In this document: positions 43,061 through 63,793 of the stretch, one piece after another
Layout: the number at the start of each line of letters is the position of its first letter
How positions within the stretch are numbered: position 1 is the stretch's first letter
Sequence record: OR699282.2
Length of the DNA stretch: 64,000 bases
Reading direction: 5' to 3' (one strand)
The notes under the pieces: generated by a model
Told to the model about the DNA's origin: nothing
Databases searched by the model: none
Seen by the model: the letters and a program-made list of their open reading frames with translations, nothing else
Translations under genes and position numbers: made by a program

Positions 43061-43176
<116 letters not shown>

Positions 43177-43180
43177 AAAT

Positions 43181-43282
<102 letters not shown>

Positions 43283-45194: not shown

Positions 45195-45210
45195 TATTAA
45201 GTATTGATAT

Positions 45211-45456
<246 letters not shown>

Positions 45457-57380: not shown

Positions 57381-58392
57381 ATGAACATCGATAAGGTCAA
57401 AGAACTTAGTGCTGCACTAATTAAGAATGAAGAAGTTTGTGAAGAACTTCGCAGTACTATCAAAGTTGAGTACGCACGACTCCAAGGTATGCTTCAAGAA
57501 TCAGAATGGGTAGTAACTAAATCTATCGAAGCAATCTATAAGGATATCGAATCCCTTTTCAACAAGAAAAGTAAGATTGAATCTGATTCATATAACAAAC
57601 GTAAAGAGTTATCTACTGCACTTGGTATCTAAAAGTATTTGAGATAACAAATAATATGGAGTACAATGTGCTCCTAATTTAATTATCAGCTAAAAAGGAA
57701 AACATTATGAAATCTATTCTCGTTGCAGTTAACCTGGTTGCTTCCCCATCTTTCAACTTCAAACAAGTTGTTGCTGATAATCTGAAGAAGATCTGTCCAA
57801 ACGCTGAATTAACTTTCTGTGTGTTTGATTCAGAAAAAGTAACTAAAGTTGATCTAAACTATCTTTTGAACGAAGTAAAAAGCGTTTCTGGTGAAAGTAA
57901 CTTAAAAGTTCTTCATGATATTGCAGAAGATTATGATGACACTCTAGTAATTTCGGAGAAATTCTAAATCAAATGATTACATTCATTCAGTACTTAATCA
58001 TTAAATTTTTTGGCTATCATACGATTGAAGGCAAAGCTACACTCGCACATAAAATCTTTGTAGCATTATGTACGGGTGATTATGACGTATTGAATAAGTA
58101 CTGTAAATCTAAAGCATGTATTGATATAATGGCACTTCGTATCTATGAGTGCCGTTCCAATAGATACAATTTTTACCAATACAGATTTGATGAAAAAGAA
58201 TTTGATAGCATCAAAATGCTTAAGAATTTATGTAACAATAAAAAGAATATGCATATATCAGAATTTGTTGCTTTGTATTTTTATTTAAAAAGTTCATTGT
58301 ATATGAACACAATGCAAAGATTCGATACTAGAATTAATGTATTCACCGATAAAGAATTTTATATATACGATAAATTCTTAGATAAGGTTTAA
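57381..58392 (+). other. hypothetical ORFs 57381-57632, 57707-57967, 57973-58392
   Basis: promoter TTGACA-17-TATAAT near 57318; AAGGA RBS. Confidence 0.6.
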
Positions 58393-58393
58393 T

Positions 58394-58891
58394 ATGACAA
58401 CTGTTTATATTGATAAACGATTAAATTTATTGATTACCGATTCTAGAGTTACGTCAACTATACCACGAAACTTATTTGGTTTTTTCCCACTAAGACCAAA
58501 ATATCAATATGGAGTTGTTAATCAAAAAACTTTATATGTACATGACCGTTTATTCAGTGCTAGTGGGGTAGTAAGTGAAATTGATAAAGTACTGGATTGG
58601 TTAATTAATAAAGTACCAGTTATACCTGACAGAAAGTTAAGTTGCCATTGTGTGCTTCTTTCTAAAGATTATGTTATTCATATGATTTTAACTAAAGGAA
58701 AGTTTATTAAAAAACTTGAATATCTACATGAAGACTACACTTTCTTTATGGGAAGTGGTGGAGAATACATGCTAGATGCTGCTATTCATGAAGAACATAC
58801 AACTTTATATGATAAAGTGTTTAGTACTTTCATGGATGTGCACAACCATGATTGTTTCACAGATGATAATATTAATGTATATCGATTTTGA
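58394..58891 (+). CDS. Ntn-hydrolase / HslV-proteasome-beta-like protein
   Basis: starts M-T-T, then TDSR, QK, SASG, FMGSGG and C-terminal HDCFTDD. Confidence 0.55.
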   Translation: MTTVYIDKRLNLLITDSRVTSTIPRNLFGFFPLRPKYQYGVVNQKTLYVHDRLFSASGVVSEIDKVLDWLINKVPVIPDRKLSCHCVLLSKDYVIHMILTKGKFIKKLEYLHEDYTFFMGSGGEYMLDAAIHEEHTTLYDKVFSTFMDVHNHDCFTDDNINVYRF

Positions 58892-58912
58892 TTTCGTCAT
58901 TAGGAGATGTAA

Positions 58913-59878
58913 GTGAAAAAGCTTGATTTAAATACAATTGCCGAAGAAGTTCTGGATGAATGTTTTGCTAATGAAGAAGTCAACACACTAGAAGCCTTAG
59001 ATTTCGTTGAAGATAAAGATGAAAATGAAGGTAAAGTACAAAGCAGTTTCAAATATAATATTACACTTAAGCGACCACCAAATGTTTCCAATGAAGATCT
59101 AATTCGTGATATTCAAGCTGGTATCAATGTAAAGAAAAACACTGAACTGTTAGTTCGTTACAATTATGGACTGATTATTGATGTAGCAAGTAAATGTACT
59201 TGTTATATCCCATTTGAAGATAAGATTTCATATGGTGTTGAGGGGTTCATGAGAGCACTAAAAACCTTTGATCTTAATAAGAATGTTAAGTTCATTACCT
59301 ATGCTTCTTCTAGTATTTACATGACAGTCTATAACGAAAGTTCTGACGCTAACTATATGGTACACTTCCCACGTTATATGAGTGTTCATAAGATCAAAGT
59401 AAAAAGATTCTGTCAGGAATATATGCGTAAACATGGTGTTCGCCCAACTCCTGAAATAATCTCAGAGGGTACTGGGATTGAGATTCAGCATGTTAATAAT
59501 TGTTTGTTATTTCAAAGCGAATACACTTCGCTGGATGCACCATTAGACGGTGTTACAGATGGTACATTAGGTGACATTATTCATTCACCTGCTTCTGATT
59601 TTAACCTCAATGTTGATAGTATCCGTGCACCTTTACGTTATGCTATCAATGAACTGACTAACGAATTGAGTACTAAAGAACGTGAGATTATCCAGCGTGT
59701 TCATGGTCTAGGTGAATATGAACCTGAAACGCTTCGTGAGATTGCTGATAATGGTTTTGTTGATGATAATGGAAAATATGTTAAATCCCGTTCATCAATA
59801 CACCGAAAGTACAGTGAAGCTATGCAAAAGCTTAAGAAGTTAGTACTTGCAAAAGGGTACGAATACGAAGATTTCTAA
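58913..59878 (+). CDS. sigma70-family RNA polymerase sigma factor
   Basis: LLVRYNYGLIIDVASK, DKISYGVEGFMRALKTFD, KFITYA, RPTPEIIS, SLDAPL, LSTKEREII, ETLREIA. Confidence 0.9.
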   Translation: MKKLDLNTIAEEVLDECFANEEVNTLEALDFVEDKDENEGKVQSSFKYNITLKRPPNVSNEDLIRDIQAGINVKKNTELLVRYNYGLIIDVASKCTCYIPFEDKISYGVEGFMRALKTFDLNKNVKFITYASSSIYMTVYNESSDANYMVHFPRYMSVHKIKVKRFCQEYMRKHGVRPTPEIISEGTGIEIQHVNNCLLFQSEYTSLDAPLDGVTDGTLGDIIHSPASDFNLNVDSIRAPLRYAINELTNELSTKEREIIQRVHGLGEYEPETLREIADNGFVDDNGKYVKSRSSIHRKYSEAMQKLKKLVLAKGYEYEDF

Positions 59879-59885
59879 AGAACAA

Positions 59886-59911
59886 GGGTTGGCTTATGCC
59901 AACCTTTTTTT
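59886..59911 (+). terminator. intrinsic terminator after the sigma factor gene
   Basis: GGGTTGGC-TTAT-GCCAACC-TTTTTTT. Confidence 0.85.
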
Positions 59912-59943
59912 ATGGGATGAAGTAAAAGTTTGTGATATAATTA

Positions 59944-60188
59944 TCTTGTACAATTCTGTTGGCATGATATTCATGTACCTGATCCACTCGAAAACGTAGA
60001 GGGCAGTTGAGCAGTCCGACAGTGCGAACAGCAAAAGAAACCCGTTAGATGTGGGCATAGTTTGAACCCCTCACGGCAATGCGGCTGTATAAAGAACCAC
60101 GTTAGGATAGCTGGTGGTTCCTTGATAGACATATAAGGATAACACCTTACGAATTATCTAAGGGAGAGTTATCGAATTTTGTACAGGA
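59944..60188 (+). ncRNA. candidate structured ncRNA C (about 245 nt)
   Basis: extended -10 TG-A-TATAAT at 59933-59941; 13-bp closing stem; internal GAACCAC/GTGGTTC; raised GC; no ORF. Confidence 0.6.
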
Positions 60189-60200
60189 AAGTTGCGTCCA

Positions 60201-60420
60201 AAATTTGAGTACTCACATTAAGTATTTGATTGCATAGATACTTAATGAAGATACACTATGTTTAAAAGTGTAGACCGTCATATGAAACTGAAGTAGAGAG
60301 AAACAGGATGACCCGCTTTCGCACTCGTTATGAGTAATCTTCAATGCAATAGCTCTGATACCATCAGCGTCAAATTTCCCTCCTTGTGGGGGGAAGAAAA
60401 ATCCCTTCCTCAAATCCCGT
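60201..60420 (+). ncRNA. candidate structured ncRNA D (about 220 nt)
   Basis: AAATTTGA/TCAAATTT closing stem, 10-bp and 6-bp perfect hairpins, TTCCCTCC/GGGGGGAA hairpin. Confidence 0.55.
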
Positions 60421-60528
60421 CAATATTAAAAGTCCTTGACAGTTATTAATCATTCGCGTAGAATACGTAGTATTAGAAGCGAACAGACATCTCGAAGAGA
60501 TGGATGATTAACCATTAAGGAATATCCA

Positions 60529-60965
60529 ATGAATTCAGTAATCTTTTTAGTAGTCGCTTTTTCTGTTAATTCCGGTGTACAAATAACCCCAATGAATTCC
60601 ATGAATCAATGTATAGCAGTACGTGATAGTACATACGAACAAGTAAACAAAGATATTTGGATTACAGTTAATAAAGAACAAATGTGGTGTTACAATAGTA
60701 ATACTAACACAAAGCTTATTGTAGGACAAACTCAATGAGTTATGGTGTTCGTTTTGAGATTCGTTCTATTGTCATCGATGCAGAGAAACAAGTATCGTTA
60801 GATGGTGATATACGTGAAATTTATCTATCATGTATACGTGCGAAATCTGAAGCAGATGCCTTAGTACAAATGTATAGTTTTAACTTTTCAAATGGATTCT
60901 ATTTGGTACGAGTTATTGAAGTGAAAAAAGTACTTATTGGTTGTAGCATAGAAGGATTAATGTAA
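60529..60965 (+). other. two small hypothetical ORFs (60529-60738, 60735-60965)
   Basis: promoter TTGACA-17-TAGAAT near 60436; AAGGA RBS. Confidence 0.55.
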
Positions 60966-60966
60966 A

Positions 60967-61755
60967 ATGAGCACTATAGATGAACTGATTCGACGGAATT
61001 CAAAATATTACCAACCATCAGAAATTGTAGGTAACATTACCAAATCAGAGTTTGGTCCAAATACTCGAAAACTCATTCATGTAATGTCACGTGATGGCTT
61101 TAAATGTGATTGTTGTGGTGAATCAAATGTAGTATTCACTTTACACAAGCACAGTACTAAAGAACGTTATAAATTCAGACCTTATGTACTTAAAGGGAAA
61201 CGCCTTGTACGCATGACGTTAGACCATAATGTACTGGACTGTCTTCAGGGCGGTAATGATAAAGAGAACATGACTGCACTGTGTGAAGATTGTAACGCAT
61301 TACGCCAGCATAAGTTTGCTGAATACAGTGAGTTTAAACACTGGTATCATAACGCGGATCGTTCAATCGAGCCTGACGTTAACTACTGCTTCATTGAGTA
61401 CATTAAGAATGCCAAAGATACATACATTCTTAAATCAATGTCACCTATTACCGTGTTTCCTGAGAACCTATTCACTACATTAAAGAATAGTTTTATTGTA
61501 GGTGATATTGATGCATTCAAGTATTTTGACAAAGGTGCAAAACATTTTGAAATTCAATGTCTTAGTACTGCACTATGTGAACTCATTAAAATTTACATAA
61601 AAGAGTATTTGGGTATTGACAATGTACGTGTACCAGAGTATACTTTTTCTATTGAATTCGATTGTGAATCAATCAAAGAGTTTGGAATTCTTTTCAATAA
61701 ACAAATAGAACTTGCAATTCAAAACGAAATCAAGTACTATACTACTAACATTTAA
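60967..61755 (+). CDS. HNH endonuclease-domain protein
   Basis: CDCCG...TLDHN...GGNDKENMTALCEDCNALR. Confidence 0.7.
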   Translation: MSTIDELIRRNSKYYQPSEIVGNITKSEFGPNTRKLIHVMSRDGFKCDCCGESNVVFTLHKHSTKERYKFRPYVLKGKRLVRMTLDHNVLDCLQGGNDKENMTALCEDCNALRQHKFAEYSEFKHWYHNADRSIEPDVNYCFIEYIKNAKDTYILKSMSPITVFPENLFTTLKNSFIVGDIDAFKYFDKGAKHFEIQCLSTALCELIKIYIKEYLGIDNVRVPEYTFSIEFDCESIKEFGILFNKQIELAIQNEIKYYTTNI

Positions 61756-61770
61756 TCAGAGGAAATTATC

Positions 61771-62164
61771 ATGCAAATTATCATTCTTATCGTTGGCATC
61801 ATGCTGGGTGTTTACGGTCACTCCTGGATGAACGAGAAGTTTCCTAATACGCGTCCTGAGTATTGCAGTACTAATGTATTCCAGAATGGTGAGAAACCAA
61901 AGGAAAGCATTGGTAAAAAGCTGGATAAAGTACTTGATGTGATCAATGAATAAGGGCCATAAAATGTTTAAACCGAATTCCAATGTTGGTAAGAAAGTTC
62001 AATTACTTGAAGATGTATCCACCATGAGTGGAATTTTCCCAAGAGGTCACATCATGACTATTATTGCCGAAACATCCCGTGGGTGGGATTTGGAAGATGC
62101 TGATGGTAATCGCATCCTTGAGGCTGGATTCTATGGTCATCGTGAATATAAAATCATTGATTAA
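61771..62164 (+). other. two small ORFs (61771-61953 membrane-anchored, 61946-62164)
   Basis: GAGGA RBS, coupled. Confidence 0.55.
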
Positions 62165-62260
62165 GGATACAACATGACTTTAGAGATTGTCTTTGGTATT
62201 GTTAGCTTAGTCGTCTGTGTGGGTTGGTTTGGGTATCTGATGATTTTTGGTGATTAATAC

Positions 62261-62288
62261 TTGACATAAGATATCAGTACTGTATAAT
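62261..62288 (+). promoter_or_regulatory. sigma70 promoter with CAGTACTG abutting the -10 box
   Basis: TTGACA-TAAGATATCAGTACTG-TATAAT. Confidence 0.85.
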
Positions 62289-62381
62289 GTTTATATCAAA
62301 GGGAATGCAGTGAAAGGAAAGACAGCATAATCGTACTCGTCACTGCGTTCCCGCCCTTTTAAATTAAATGAGGAATTAACT

Positions 62382-63793
62382 ATGTTTCAAACTAACACTC
62401 AAGGTTTTGTAATCATCGATTTGAATCAAAACAGCGGTTATTGGATGAAACCTACTGACGCATGTATGCAGTTTGATTTTTTAGGTTACAGGATTAGTGT
62501 AAGTACTGGTGCTTCTGTACTGCGTGGTGGTTGTATCGTTGAACATCTGGTAACTGATCCAGAAGGTCGTGAGTATGAAATCGCAGGTTCGGTACAAGAT
62601 GCCATTATGTTTGTATGTCAGCGTGAAATGAATAGTTCGAATTCAAATGCACTGACTCATGCTCTTTCTCAAGAAGTGGAGGTTCGTTAATGAAATATAT
62701 CGTAGCAGTACTCGTTGCATTTTTACTCACTGCATGTGACGCTTCAACAAAAGAACGCACAAGTGATTTTATTCTCCCTATTGAATTACAAGAAGCAGGA
62801 TGTAAGATTTATCGTATGCAAAAGGACGGTGCTGGCGTAACCTTGTATACAGTTTATTGCCCTAATGCAAATACCAGTACTGGATACAGCAGCGGTAAAA
62901 CACGAATCAATACTTCAGTGATTAATGGAGTACAACAATGAGCCTTGATACAACCCGTGCAACAGATTTATTAACTCGTATGAATAATGAAGAATTTCTT
63001 GCTGAAATAAAGTACAAGCTTGAAAAACTGGCACGAAGTGCTGAAGTAATTGAAGTTGAAGGTCACTTACCAATGGACCAATTCAATACGTTCAACGAAG
63101 ATATGGTTTATTATCCAAATGAAATTTGGATTGAGTGGGAGTCATGGACTAACAAAACTCTACGCATTGAAGGTTATTGTGTGAATTATGAATCTGAACC
63201 TGGTGATGTTACAAAAACTCTCTCCATTTGGTGTACAAAAACACATGAACTCGTTGAGGTGAATTTGAATTATATGAAAGGTTTCCGTTGGGGTGATGTT
63301 CAATGATTAAAAAACTATTGACAGTTGTCTTTGTATTCTGTACAATGTTTCTTACAGCATGTAATGATGACGGCAGGTTTAGTGCAAAAGACTTAGTTCG
63401 TCAGGATTGTACATTCACAGGTAAGTCTTTTATTAACGAGTATGAGGTATGTACACAATCAGGCCGTATCTGTGGTGGTTGGGAAAAACGACAGGAGCGA
63501 TTGTATGTATATGAATGCCCTGGACATCACAACAAAGTACTAAGCACACACAAACTTGTTTATGATAAGGTTGAATAATGACTACCAATGAAATGATGCA
63601 GGTTATTTGGGATAAAGGTTGTGATATTAAAATCACTAGTACTGATGTTCGTGTATTCAAAACTGAATATATGGAGTACTTGGACCTTGATACTTATAAT
63701 AATATTGTATCAATTGAACACAAAGGTGCAGTACTGGAAACCATTGACGTAGTACTCAAGAAAGCTACCGACCTATTAGGAGTGGCAGTGTGA
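62382..63793 (+). other. hypothetical ORFs 62382-62690, 62690-62941 (lipoprotein), 62938-63306, 63303-63578 (lipoprotein), 63578-63793
   Basis: coupled ORFs; lipobox-like LTAC in 62690 and 63303. Confidence 0.65.

Follow-up and report, generated by a model that had tools for sequence, protein, structure and literature searches.

An apparently undescribed family of large, highly structured non-coding RNAs in RaK2-like jumbo phages

Which product, if any, is encoded in the ORF-free gap of 650 bp that follows a sigma factor gene and its terminator in an Asteriusvirus genome? The DNA analysed here (the window, a stretch of 64,000 nt from record OR699282.2) originates from a jumbo phage of this group: its positions 59850-60530 are 100% identical to phAPEC6 and BAU.Micro_ELP-22 and 99.7% identical to G17, and in the inner part (59930-60470) the identity is 100% with both phAPEC6 and G17. 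The same gap is unannotated in the curated G17 record. In a preliminary description, the segment 59933-60188 was considered to encode an unclassified RNA of about 245 nt, for which the position suggested a regulator related to RNA polymerase or to the sigma factor. The locus is organised as follows:

58913-59878, + strand: gene for a phage sigma-70-family factor of 321 aa (Pfam Sigma70_r2, r3, r4)
59884-59914, + strand: intrinsic terminator of the sigma gene, with a 10-bp stem (59884-59907) and a T-run; an annotated terminator in G17 and UE-S1
59933-59941, + strand: extended -10 promoter TGATATAAT, with an expected start at ~59948-59950
~59949-60428, + strand: the whole conserved RNA body of ~480 nt (nhmmer E=1.5e-130, alignments and metatranscriptome contigs)
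60436-60464, + strand: the next sigma-70-like promoter, TTGACA-17-TAGAAT, serving the downstream ORFs

In G17, 121Q and PBECO4, the upstream gene carries the annotation of a sigma factor. The location of the RNA 3' of the sigma factor terminator and its extended -10 motif had been recognised correctly in the preliminary description, as had the raised GC content (0.51 at 59975-60124 vs. ~0.32 in the background). Between the RNA body and the promoter at 60436-60464 there is no terminator, and the small ORFs downstream of the RNA begin at 60529. The window harbours one family copy only. Further downstream, the ORF 60967-61755 (+ strand, 262 aa), which is labelled HNH in 121Q, shows a weak HNH endonuclease signature (Pfam E ~0.02; CxxC...DH...N...CxxC). 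A functional tie between the RNA and this HNH-like ORF was considered and rejected, since the genes located 3' of other copies of the RNA are unrelated; indeed, the downstream genes differ from copy to copy.

The motif TGNTATAAT is present at 27 sites in the window (43068-43076, 45205-45213, 59933-59941 and 24 others), compared to 8.6 expected sites, and none of 100 shuffles reached 27; the + strand carries 21 of the 27 sites. Sites precede tRNA genes as well as the RNA by 7-11 nt (for tRNA, the site 43068 with the gene at 43087 and the site 45205 with that at 45220). The enrichment and the location upstream of tRNA genes suggest a -35-independent promoter class, which plausibly serves the stable RNAs of the phage along with many other genes, and from which the start of the RNA given above follows. 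The sequence TGnTATAAT precedes nearly all family copies, including the copy in an E. coli island described below. In several paralogues, a GC-rich hairpin with a run of six to seven U is located directly after the promoter and before the RNA body, and could stabilise the 5' end or act as an attenuator. This hairpin is lacking in the window copy, the promoter of which is preceded by the sigma terminator instead.

At none of the copies is the RNA followed by a terminator, and the next sigma-70-like promoter lies 15-80 nt further on. The RNA could thus be part of longer transcripts, and its mature 3' end would probably arise by processing. CGAAG-type hairpins (CATCTCGAAGAGATG, CATTCGAAGAATG, GCGAAGCG) adjoin the sigma-70-like promoter after each RNA copy; in the window, a short hairpin with a loop of this type is located at 60488-60502, and equivalents recur 3' of other copies, for example that of CBB. 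They may represent a separate regulatory or processing motif.

Environmental RNA libraries point to transcription of the locus. Within 5.7 kb (57800-63500), the contigs of two wastewater metatranscriptomes are located almost only on the RNA:

60006-60304, unstranded: contig with a depth of 9.7
60091-60241, unstranded: contig
60363-60513, unstranded: contig extending from the RNA into the downstream leader

The only other matches of these two metatranscriptomes within the 5.7 kb are a short contig at the 5' edge of the stretch and a 33-nt piece that fits poorly. From a third RNA library, a contig at 60124-60408 and a separate downstream block were obtained. Since these are unstranded assembler contigs, with some DNA carry-over possible, the evidence for transcription is supportive, short of proof. 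For a stretch of 2.5 kb around a paralogue, 6-14% of the words were found in many wastewater metatranscriptomes; this coverage is unplaced and constitutes weak evidence, compatible with coverage of the RNA only.

Comparison with distant relatives revealed the extent of the RNA. In Serratia phage BF, Erwinia pEa_SNUABM phages, Pectobacterium phage CBB, Cronobacter phage GAP32, Yersinia phage fHe-Yen9-04, the Salmonella Munch group and the Xanthomonas phages XbC2 and XaC1, the conserved part is not 59933-60188 but ~59950-60428, at 60-72% identity, and conservation ends a few bases past CAAAUCCCGUCAAU (60411-60424). The alignments show a predicted fold of two domains, with at least 15 helices and two pseudoknots, the latter found by a covariation scan allowing crossing pairs:

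59950-60170, + strand: 5' domain, roughly the segment of the preliminary description (RNAalifold, 35 copies)
59956-59962/60016-60022, + strand: helix of the 5' domain
59963-59967/59971-59975, + strand: hairpin of the 5' domain
59984-59989/59999-60003, + strand: helix of the 5' domain, closing the conserved loop GAAAACGUA
60028-60032/60084-60088, + strand: helix of the 5' domain
60042-60049/60071-60076, + strand: helix of the 5' domain
60053-55/60067-69, + strand: helix GGG/CCC of the 5' domain
60094-60099/60115-60120, + strand: stem GAACCA/UGGUUC of the 5' domain, with covariation at 6 of 6 pairs
60134-38/60145-49, + strand: conserved stem UAAGG/CCUUA of the 5' domain
60172-60208, + strand: inter-domain hairpin module, with the stem 60172-60181/60199-60208 and a conserved 17-nt loop (consensus UACAAUAUAGAUCCGUC)
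60209-60428, + strand: 3' domain (covariation, 23 copies)
60216-60225/60238-60247, + strand: hairpin of the 3' domain
60229-60235/60344-60350, + strand: pseudoknot 1, formed by the loop of the hairpin 60216-60225/60238-60247 with a distal segment over 7 bp; double changes in at least 2 sequences at 5 of 7 pairs
60277-60281/60308-60312, + strand: pseudoknot 2, crossing the helices 60289-60293/60339-60343 and 60296-60300/60316-60320
60323-25/60333-35, 60355-59/60363-67 and 60376-83/60388-95, + strand: hairpins of the 3' domain
60411-60424, + strand: conserved tail CAAAUCCCGUCAAU of the 3' domain

The conserved single strands of the 5' domain include GAUAGACAUAUAAGG and UAAGGGAG (60159-60166). 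In a paralogue group of BF, CBB and GAP32, the Shine-Dalgarno-like UAAGGGAG is followed by a mini-ORF of seven codons, MH(R/Q)(I/F)CTI-stop, which neither the window copy nor most of the others contain. The inter-domain position is the usual one for the hairpin module with the loop UACAAUAUAGAUCCGUC, the stem of which shows compensatory changes. One paralogue group carries the module within the counterpart of the hairpin 60323-60335, the E. coli island copy has it twice, once in each place, and RaK2 has none. The apical part of the helix 60042-60076 occurs in short and long versions across the copies.

In an RNAalifold analysis of 17 full-length copies, 45 of 85 predicted pairs keep pairing through changes on both sides. 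For the 5' domain (35 copies) this holds for 27 of 34 pairs, and in the 3' domain (23 copies) 17 of 32 pairs show compensatory changes; standard pairs make up 96.6% and 98.1% of the cells, respectively. The covariation score of the 5' domain was 0.575, compared to at most 0.13 when the 3' partners were slid by 1-3 columns and at most 0.19 in 300 column shuffles. The corresponding values for the 3' domain were 0.502, at most 0.14 and at most 0.29, with the slid controls ranging from 0.05 to 0.14. Covariation in homologues had been named as a check in the preliminary description, and the outcome is clearly positive. The folding energy of the single sequence is no better than chance (z = -1.32 for the whole RNA and -0.79 for 59933-60188), and thus the support for the structure is comparative.

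Among the internal stems proposed earlier, GAACCAC/GTGGTTC was recovered in the form of the covarying stem at 60094-60120, CCC/GGG is supported, and CCTT/AAGG is conserved in a slightly longer version. The stem CGGC/GCTG was not borne out: 60073-60076 pair with 60042-60045, and 60084-60088 with 60028-60032. The same applies to the proposed pairing of the two ends over 13 bp (59944-59956 with 60174-60188), which is confined to the window copy (-6.7 kcal/mol) and phage UE-S1 (-6.8 kcal/mol). The mean energy of this pairing in 26 copies is -2.7 kcal/mol, compared to -6.5 kcal/mol for the local hairpin 60172-60181/60199-60208, which takes the same 3' arm and is the stronger one in 22 of the 26; in addition, the 5' arm is largely upstream of the expected start of the RNA. 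The 3' boundary at 60188 also has to be given up, since conservation and covarying helices continue to ~60428, and the 3' domain with its two pseudoknots had been missed. The preliminary description is therefore partly confirmed. It was right in kind, as an unclassified, structured RNA with an own promoter is present here, but wrong in extent (two domains and ~480 nt instead of ~245 nt) and in the functional inference.

A reading without any RNA gene, in which the locus contains small protein genes or a DNA repeat, could be derived from existing annotations: the RNA is covered by three to five hypothetical proteins or by a repeat_region in the records OR699282.2, PP886230.1, PQ330092.1, JN882285.1 (GAP32_503A) and ON568341.1, the annotation in UE-S1 being repeat_region. 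However, there is no codon periodicity, as substitutions in close pairs of copies are distributed 168/154/159 over positions mod 3, and of the 61 internal gaps, 59 have a length not divisible by three, in agreement with the lack of an ORF noted earlier. Moreover, the compensatory base-pair changes are extensive and strand-specific and include G-U pairs. We give this reading practically no chance. The lack of a coding signal implies that the hypothetical proteins are probably over-calls, which is of practical importance, since three to five of them are annotated over the RNA in several GenBank records.

The RNA family is genuine and, as it appears, hitherto undescribed. We found no description of it in the literature, and all motifs reported from a large screen for structured RNAs in viruses are 29-151 nt long (PMC10690425). 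Family members are recovered with nhmmer E-values of 1e-100 to 1e-151; the window copy (E=1.5e-130) matches the family profile over positions 11-567, and in it the two pseudoknots are retained as well as the covarying helices. By BLAST, 62-72 phage records match, with 3-5 places in each of the non-Klebsiella records and 1-2 places in the Klebsiella RaK2-type genomes; for RaK2 itself, BLAST shows no more than 2 places, and the sequence of a single diverged copy was examined. Copies were recovered by IMG/VR pattern scans and nhmmer. One loose IMG/VR pattern and most metagenome pattern matches were due to chance and were removed with nhmmer, so that only 14 of the metagenome matches are true members, all from the same phage type. 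Each RaK2-like jumbo phage examined in full harbours 4-5 paralogues, which are ~60% identical, are all located on the coding strand and lie ~50-85 kb apart; the genera with paralogues are Asterius-, Mimas-, Eneladus- and Alcyoneusvirus and relatives. Examples are:

Serratia phage BF, coding strand: copies at 30.5, 93.0, 174.5, 258.8 and 335.3 kb
Yersinia phage fHe-Yen9-04, coding strand: copies at 24.5, 93.3, 174.3, 260.4 and 334.7 kb
phAPEC6 (the genome of the window), coding strand: copies at 40.1-40.7 kb (the window copy), 150.8 and 285.2 kb, three of four BLAST places being located

In a tree of 41 distinct copies, the paralogue groups each span several genera, and thus these genera diverged only after the duplications.

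Copies are present also in bacterial genomes, where they are single and are found at prophage ends of Enterobacterales and in an E. coli island. A full-length copy exists in 2 of 5426 complete E. coli genomes, and a scan of GTDB representative genomes revealed three more copies, while PLSDB plasmids contain none:

E. coli LR-29-1: copy in an island at ffs (nhmmer E=1.6e-116)
Serratia sp. 2723: full-length copy adjoining a large serine recombinase
Enterobacteriaceae MAG: full-length copy at a prophage end, adjoining a CI-type repressor
Serratia sp. L9: partial copy

The island of E. coli LR-29-1 (~10.5 kb, located at ffs, the gene for SRP RNA; NZ_AP027515.1, ~3,472,900-3,483,700) contains an integrase split by IS3, the full-length RNA copy, a membrane protein, PDC-M45 and a resolvase; PDC-M45 is a PADLOC candidate defence system, which here consists of DuOB, DUF488 and DUF4326 genes. 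When the island is compared to phage DNA, the RNA cassette alone is similar, with the best match (80.6%) to the BF paralogue at 174 kb. The RNA cassette was captured as a unit by unrelated integrative elements, and it is all that the surroundings of the three full-length bacterial copies have in common with the phages. In two bacterial elements the next large ORF is convergent to the RNA, which therefore is no leader there. No conserved cognate protein was found beside the RNA copies.

On balance, we consider it probable, with considerable reservation, that 59949-60428 (+ strand) is the gene for a stand-alone, trans-acting and highly structured non-coding RNA of ~480 nt. Action in trans is suggested by the self-contained cassette, by the unrelated neighbours and by the convergent gene in two bacterial elements. 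The RNA would be transcribed by the host sigma-70 RNA polymerase and would act through its three-dimensional fold as a scaffold, a decoy or an RNA-protein or RNA-only assembly, with a partner which may be something common to infections of Enterobacterales, in a manner as proposed for GOLLD and ROOL; it would have no regulatory tie to the sigma gene next to it. Such a role leaves the regular dispersal of the copies around the genome unexplained. It is tempting to speculate further, as a tentative and rather doubtful possibility, that the paralogues represent a novel class of large functional RNA, as its subunits or as variants with different specificity, which either form a hetero-oligomeric particle (RNA-only or RNA-protein) as a Gram-negative counterpart of the GOLLD and ROOL cages or are new large ribozymes, and of which integrative elements have captured copies. 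If true, prophages and defence islands took single copies in order to make use of the process concerned or to block it.

Other readings have to be weighed against the trans-acting RNA. A 6S-like RNA of ~245 nt regulating RNA polymerase or the phage sigma factor, in the sense of the regulator envisaged in the preliminary description, was deduced from the position directly after the sigma gene, but this adjacency is peculiar to Asteriusviruses. Unrelated genes surround the remaining 3-4 paralogues of each genome, as they do the orthologues from other genera and the copies in bacteria, and thus the idea is unsupported. Taking into account that the RNA is twice as long, gives no 6S match and has several domains instead of a rod with a central bubble, we regard it as very improbable. 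The even, co-oriented dispersal of the copies would be accounted for by a cis element, which could provide put-like processive antitermination or RNA stabilisation, or serve as an origin primer in the manner of ColE1 RNA II or T4 origin transcripts. In line with this, there are 4-5 copies at the spacing and in the orientation given above, each is located just after a promoter and is followed, without a terminator, by co-directional genes, and the contig 60363-60513 spans the RNA and the downstream leader. However, a strong sigma-70-like promoter of its own precedes each downstream gene block, the GC skew has no inflection in the window, including at the RNA element, and the stand-alone copies in prophages and in the island face convergent genes. 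Known cis antiterminators have a length of ~70 nt, and no requirement for conserved pseudoknotted folds is known for origin transcripts. A cis role thus appears to us quite unlikely.

Unlikely, though worth considering, is a role in defence or counter-defence, in which the phage copies are early-expressed decoys or sponges for host immunity or for an RNA-targeting factor, and the copies in prophages and islands protect their own element or interfere with superinfecting jumbo phages. The bacterial copies are indeed located at accessory or immunity sites (the prophage end with the CI repressor, integrases, the PDC-M45 island), the E. coli island copy is similar to one phage paralogue while its flanks are dissimilar, and the sigma-70-type extended -10 motif of the phage copies would be compatible with transcription by the host polymerase on entry. 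Yet this support is by association only, very few of the complete E. coli genomes carry a copy, no cognate protein is conserved alongside, and a simple sponge needs no 4-5 divergent paralogues. Finally, the RNA could be a large ribozyme that, for example, processes its own 5' or 3' end or cleaves or ligates another RNA such as tRNA or mRNA, in which case the paralogues would differ in substrate specificity. Its size, the two pseudoknots, the many invariant unpaired nucleotides and the relocatable peripheral modules are typical of large ribozymes, and the missing terminator implies a need for processing. However, no Rfam ribozyme matches, including RNase P, group I and II introns and small self-cleavers, no conserved cleavage-site signature was identified, and the metatranscriptome data are without sharp ends; we therefore hold catalysis to be decidedly unlikely.

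The identification of this RNA family is important for several reasons. Large, intricately folded RNAs of bacteria and phages are rare, and the known ones are ribozymes or ornate RNAs of unknown function, the structures of which were surprising. The jumbo phages with the RNA (of E. coli, Salmonella, Serratia, Erwinia and Klebsiella) are cultivable, making the family directly testable in laboratory strains, and its natural variation is already enough for a confident secondary structure. Further, its genetics is unusual, with ancient paralogues in each genome, relocatable modules, and capture by prophages and by a defence island.

How does the RNA compare with known families? With Rfam 15 at gathering thresholds no match was obtained, and at E<=10 the region 59700-60600 of the window and 13 homologous loci gave scattered noise without a recurring family. 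RNase P, 6S, tmRNA, introns, GOLLD, ROOL and HEARO are thereby excluded as families, and the cmscan check proposed in the preliminary description agrees with its statement that the RNA is unclassified. The likeness to the J11/12 region of RNase P seen there was not substantiated, as no RNase P model matched the window copy or any copy in the 13 homologous loci at E<=10. The two RNAs are similar in size, the purine-rich CAGUGCGAACAGCAAAAGAAACCCG is superficially J11/12-like, and the phage genome is tRNA-rich. However, CAGUGCGAACAGCAAAAGAAACCCG is located in and around the helices 60028-60032/60084-60088 and 60042-60045/60073-60076, which is a hairpin-in-helix arrangement instead of J11/12, several paralogues would be unexpected for RNase P, and no P4-type helix with the universal motifs was seen: the long-range helices 60229-35/60344-50 and 60277-81/60308-12 differ from P4 (CR-I/CR-V) in sequence and topology, and the sole AAAGUCC string (60429-60435) is located in the upstream region of the next promoter and is not conserved as such. 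With 6S RNA, a rod of ~180 nt with a central bubble, the RNA shares that it is non-coding and could sit near transcription genes, but here the sigma adjacency is not conserved, the RNA is multi-domain and pseudoknotted, and no model matches. Group I and group II introns were rejected on the grounds that Rfam gave no match and that the RNA is intergenic with an own promoter. There is also no tmRNA match; within the window, Rfam matches to tRNA are confined to 43-47 kb, with 12.5 kb between the RNA and the closest tRNA gene, and ARAGORN found no tRNA or tmRNA in 26 loci holding other copies. Among the tRNA matches, 43181-43259 is a borderline call (29.3 bits vs. a gathering score of 29) adjoining the strong tRNA 43087-43173. 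Hammerhead-like strings (CUGAU...GAAA...GAUGAG) and strings resembling CsrA sites (ACAGGAUGA) were also discarded, as their key bases are not conserved across the paralogues.

Several phage and plasmid RNAs offer functional analogies. The pRNA of phi29 is an oligomeric part of a motor, HK022 put RNA is a cis antiterminator, and ColE1 RNA II is a replication primer. All are much smaller or have another architecture, homology to them is not expected, and the three modes are by analogy candidates for a dispersed multi-copy RNA. In the jumbo phage PA5oct, a distant relative of the RaK2 clade, four long ncRNAs are expressed, with up to 5% of the phage reads; ncRNA001-004 are ORF-free and have 236-619 nt, and two are very abundant in RNA-seq (PMC7318152). 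The family profile has no sequence similarity to the PA5oct region holding ncRNA001 and ncRNA002.

The nearest kind to the RNA family described here is that of the large ornate phage and prophage RNAs GOLLD and ROOL, which are pseudoknotted, have no known function and form RNA-only cages (PMC12286853). The likeness extends to the size (roughly 480 to more than 800 nt), the many helices, the several pseudoknots detected by covariation (PMC12286853), the encoding by phages and prophages, the absence of an associated protein gene and the unknown function; with ~480 nt, at least 15 helices, two pseudoknots and no partner gene, the RNA corresponds to the description of an ornate RNA. Homology was rejected, since no GOLLD or ROOL model matched even at E<=10. 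In contrast to GOLLD and ROOL, which occur once per genome and are often near tRNA arrays, the family described here has no tRNA adjacency and is present in jumbo phages of Gram-negative hosts with 4-5 diverged paralogues per genome.
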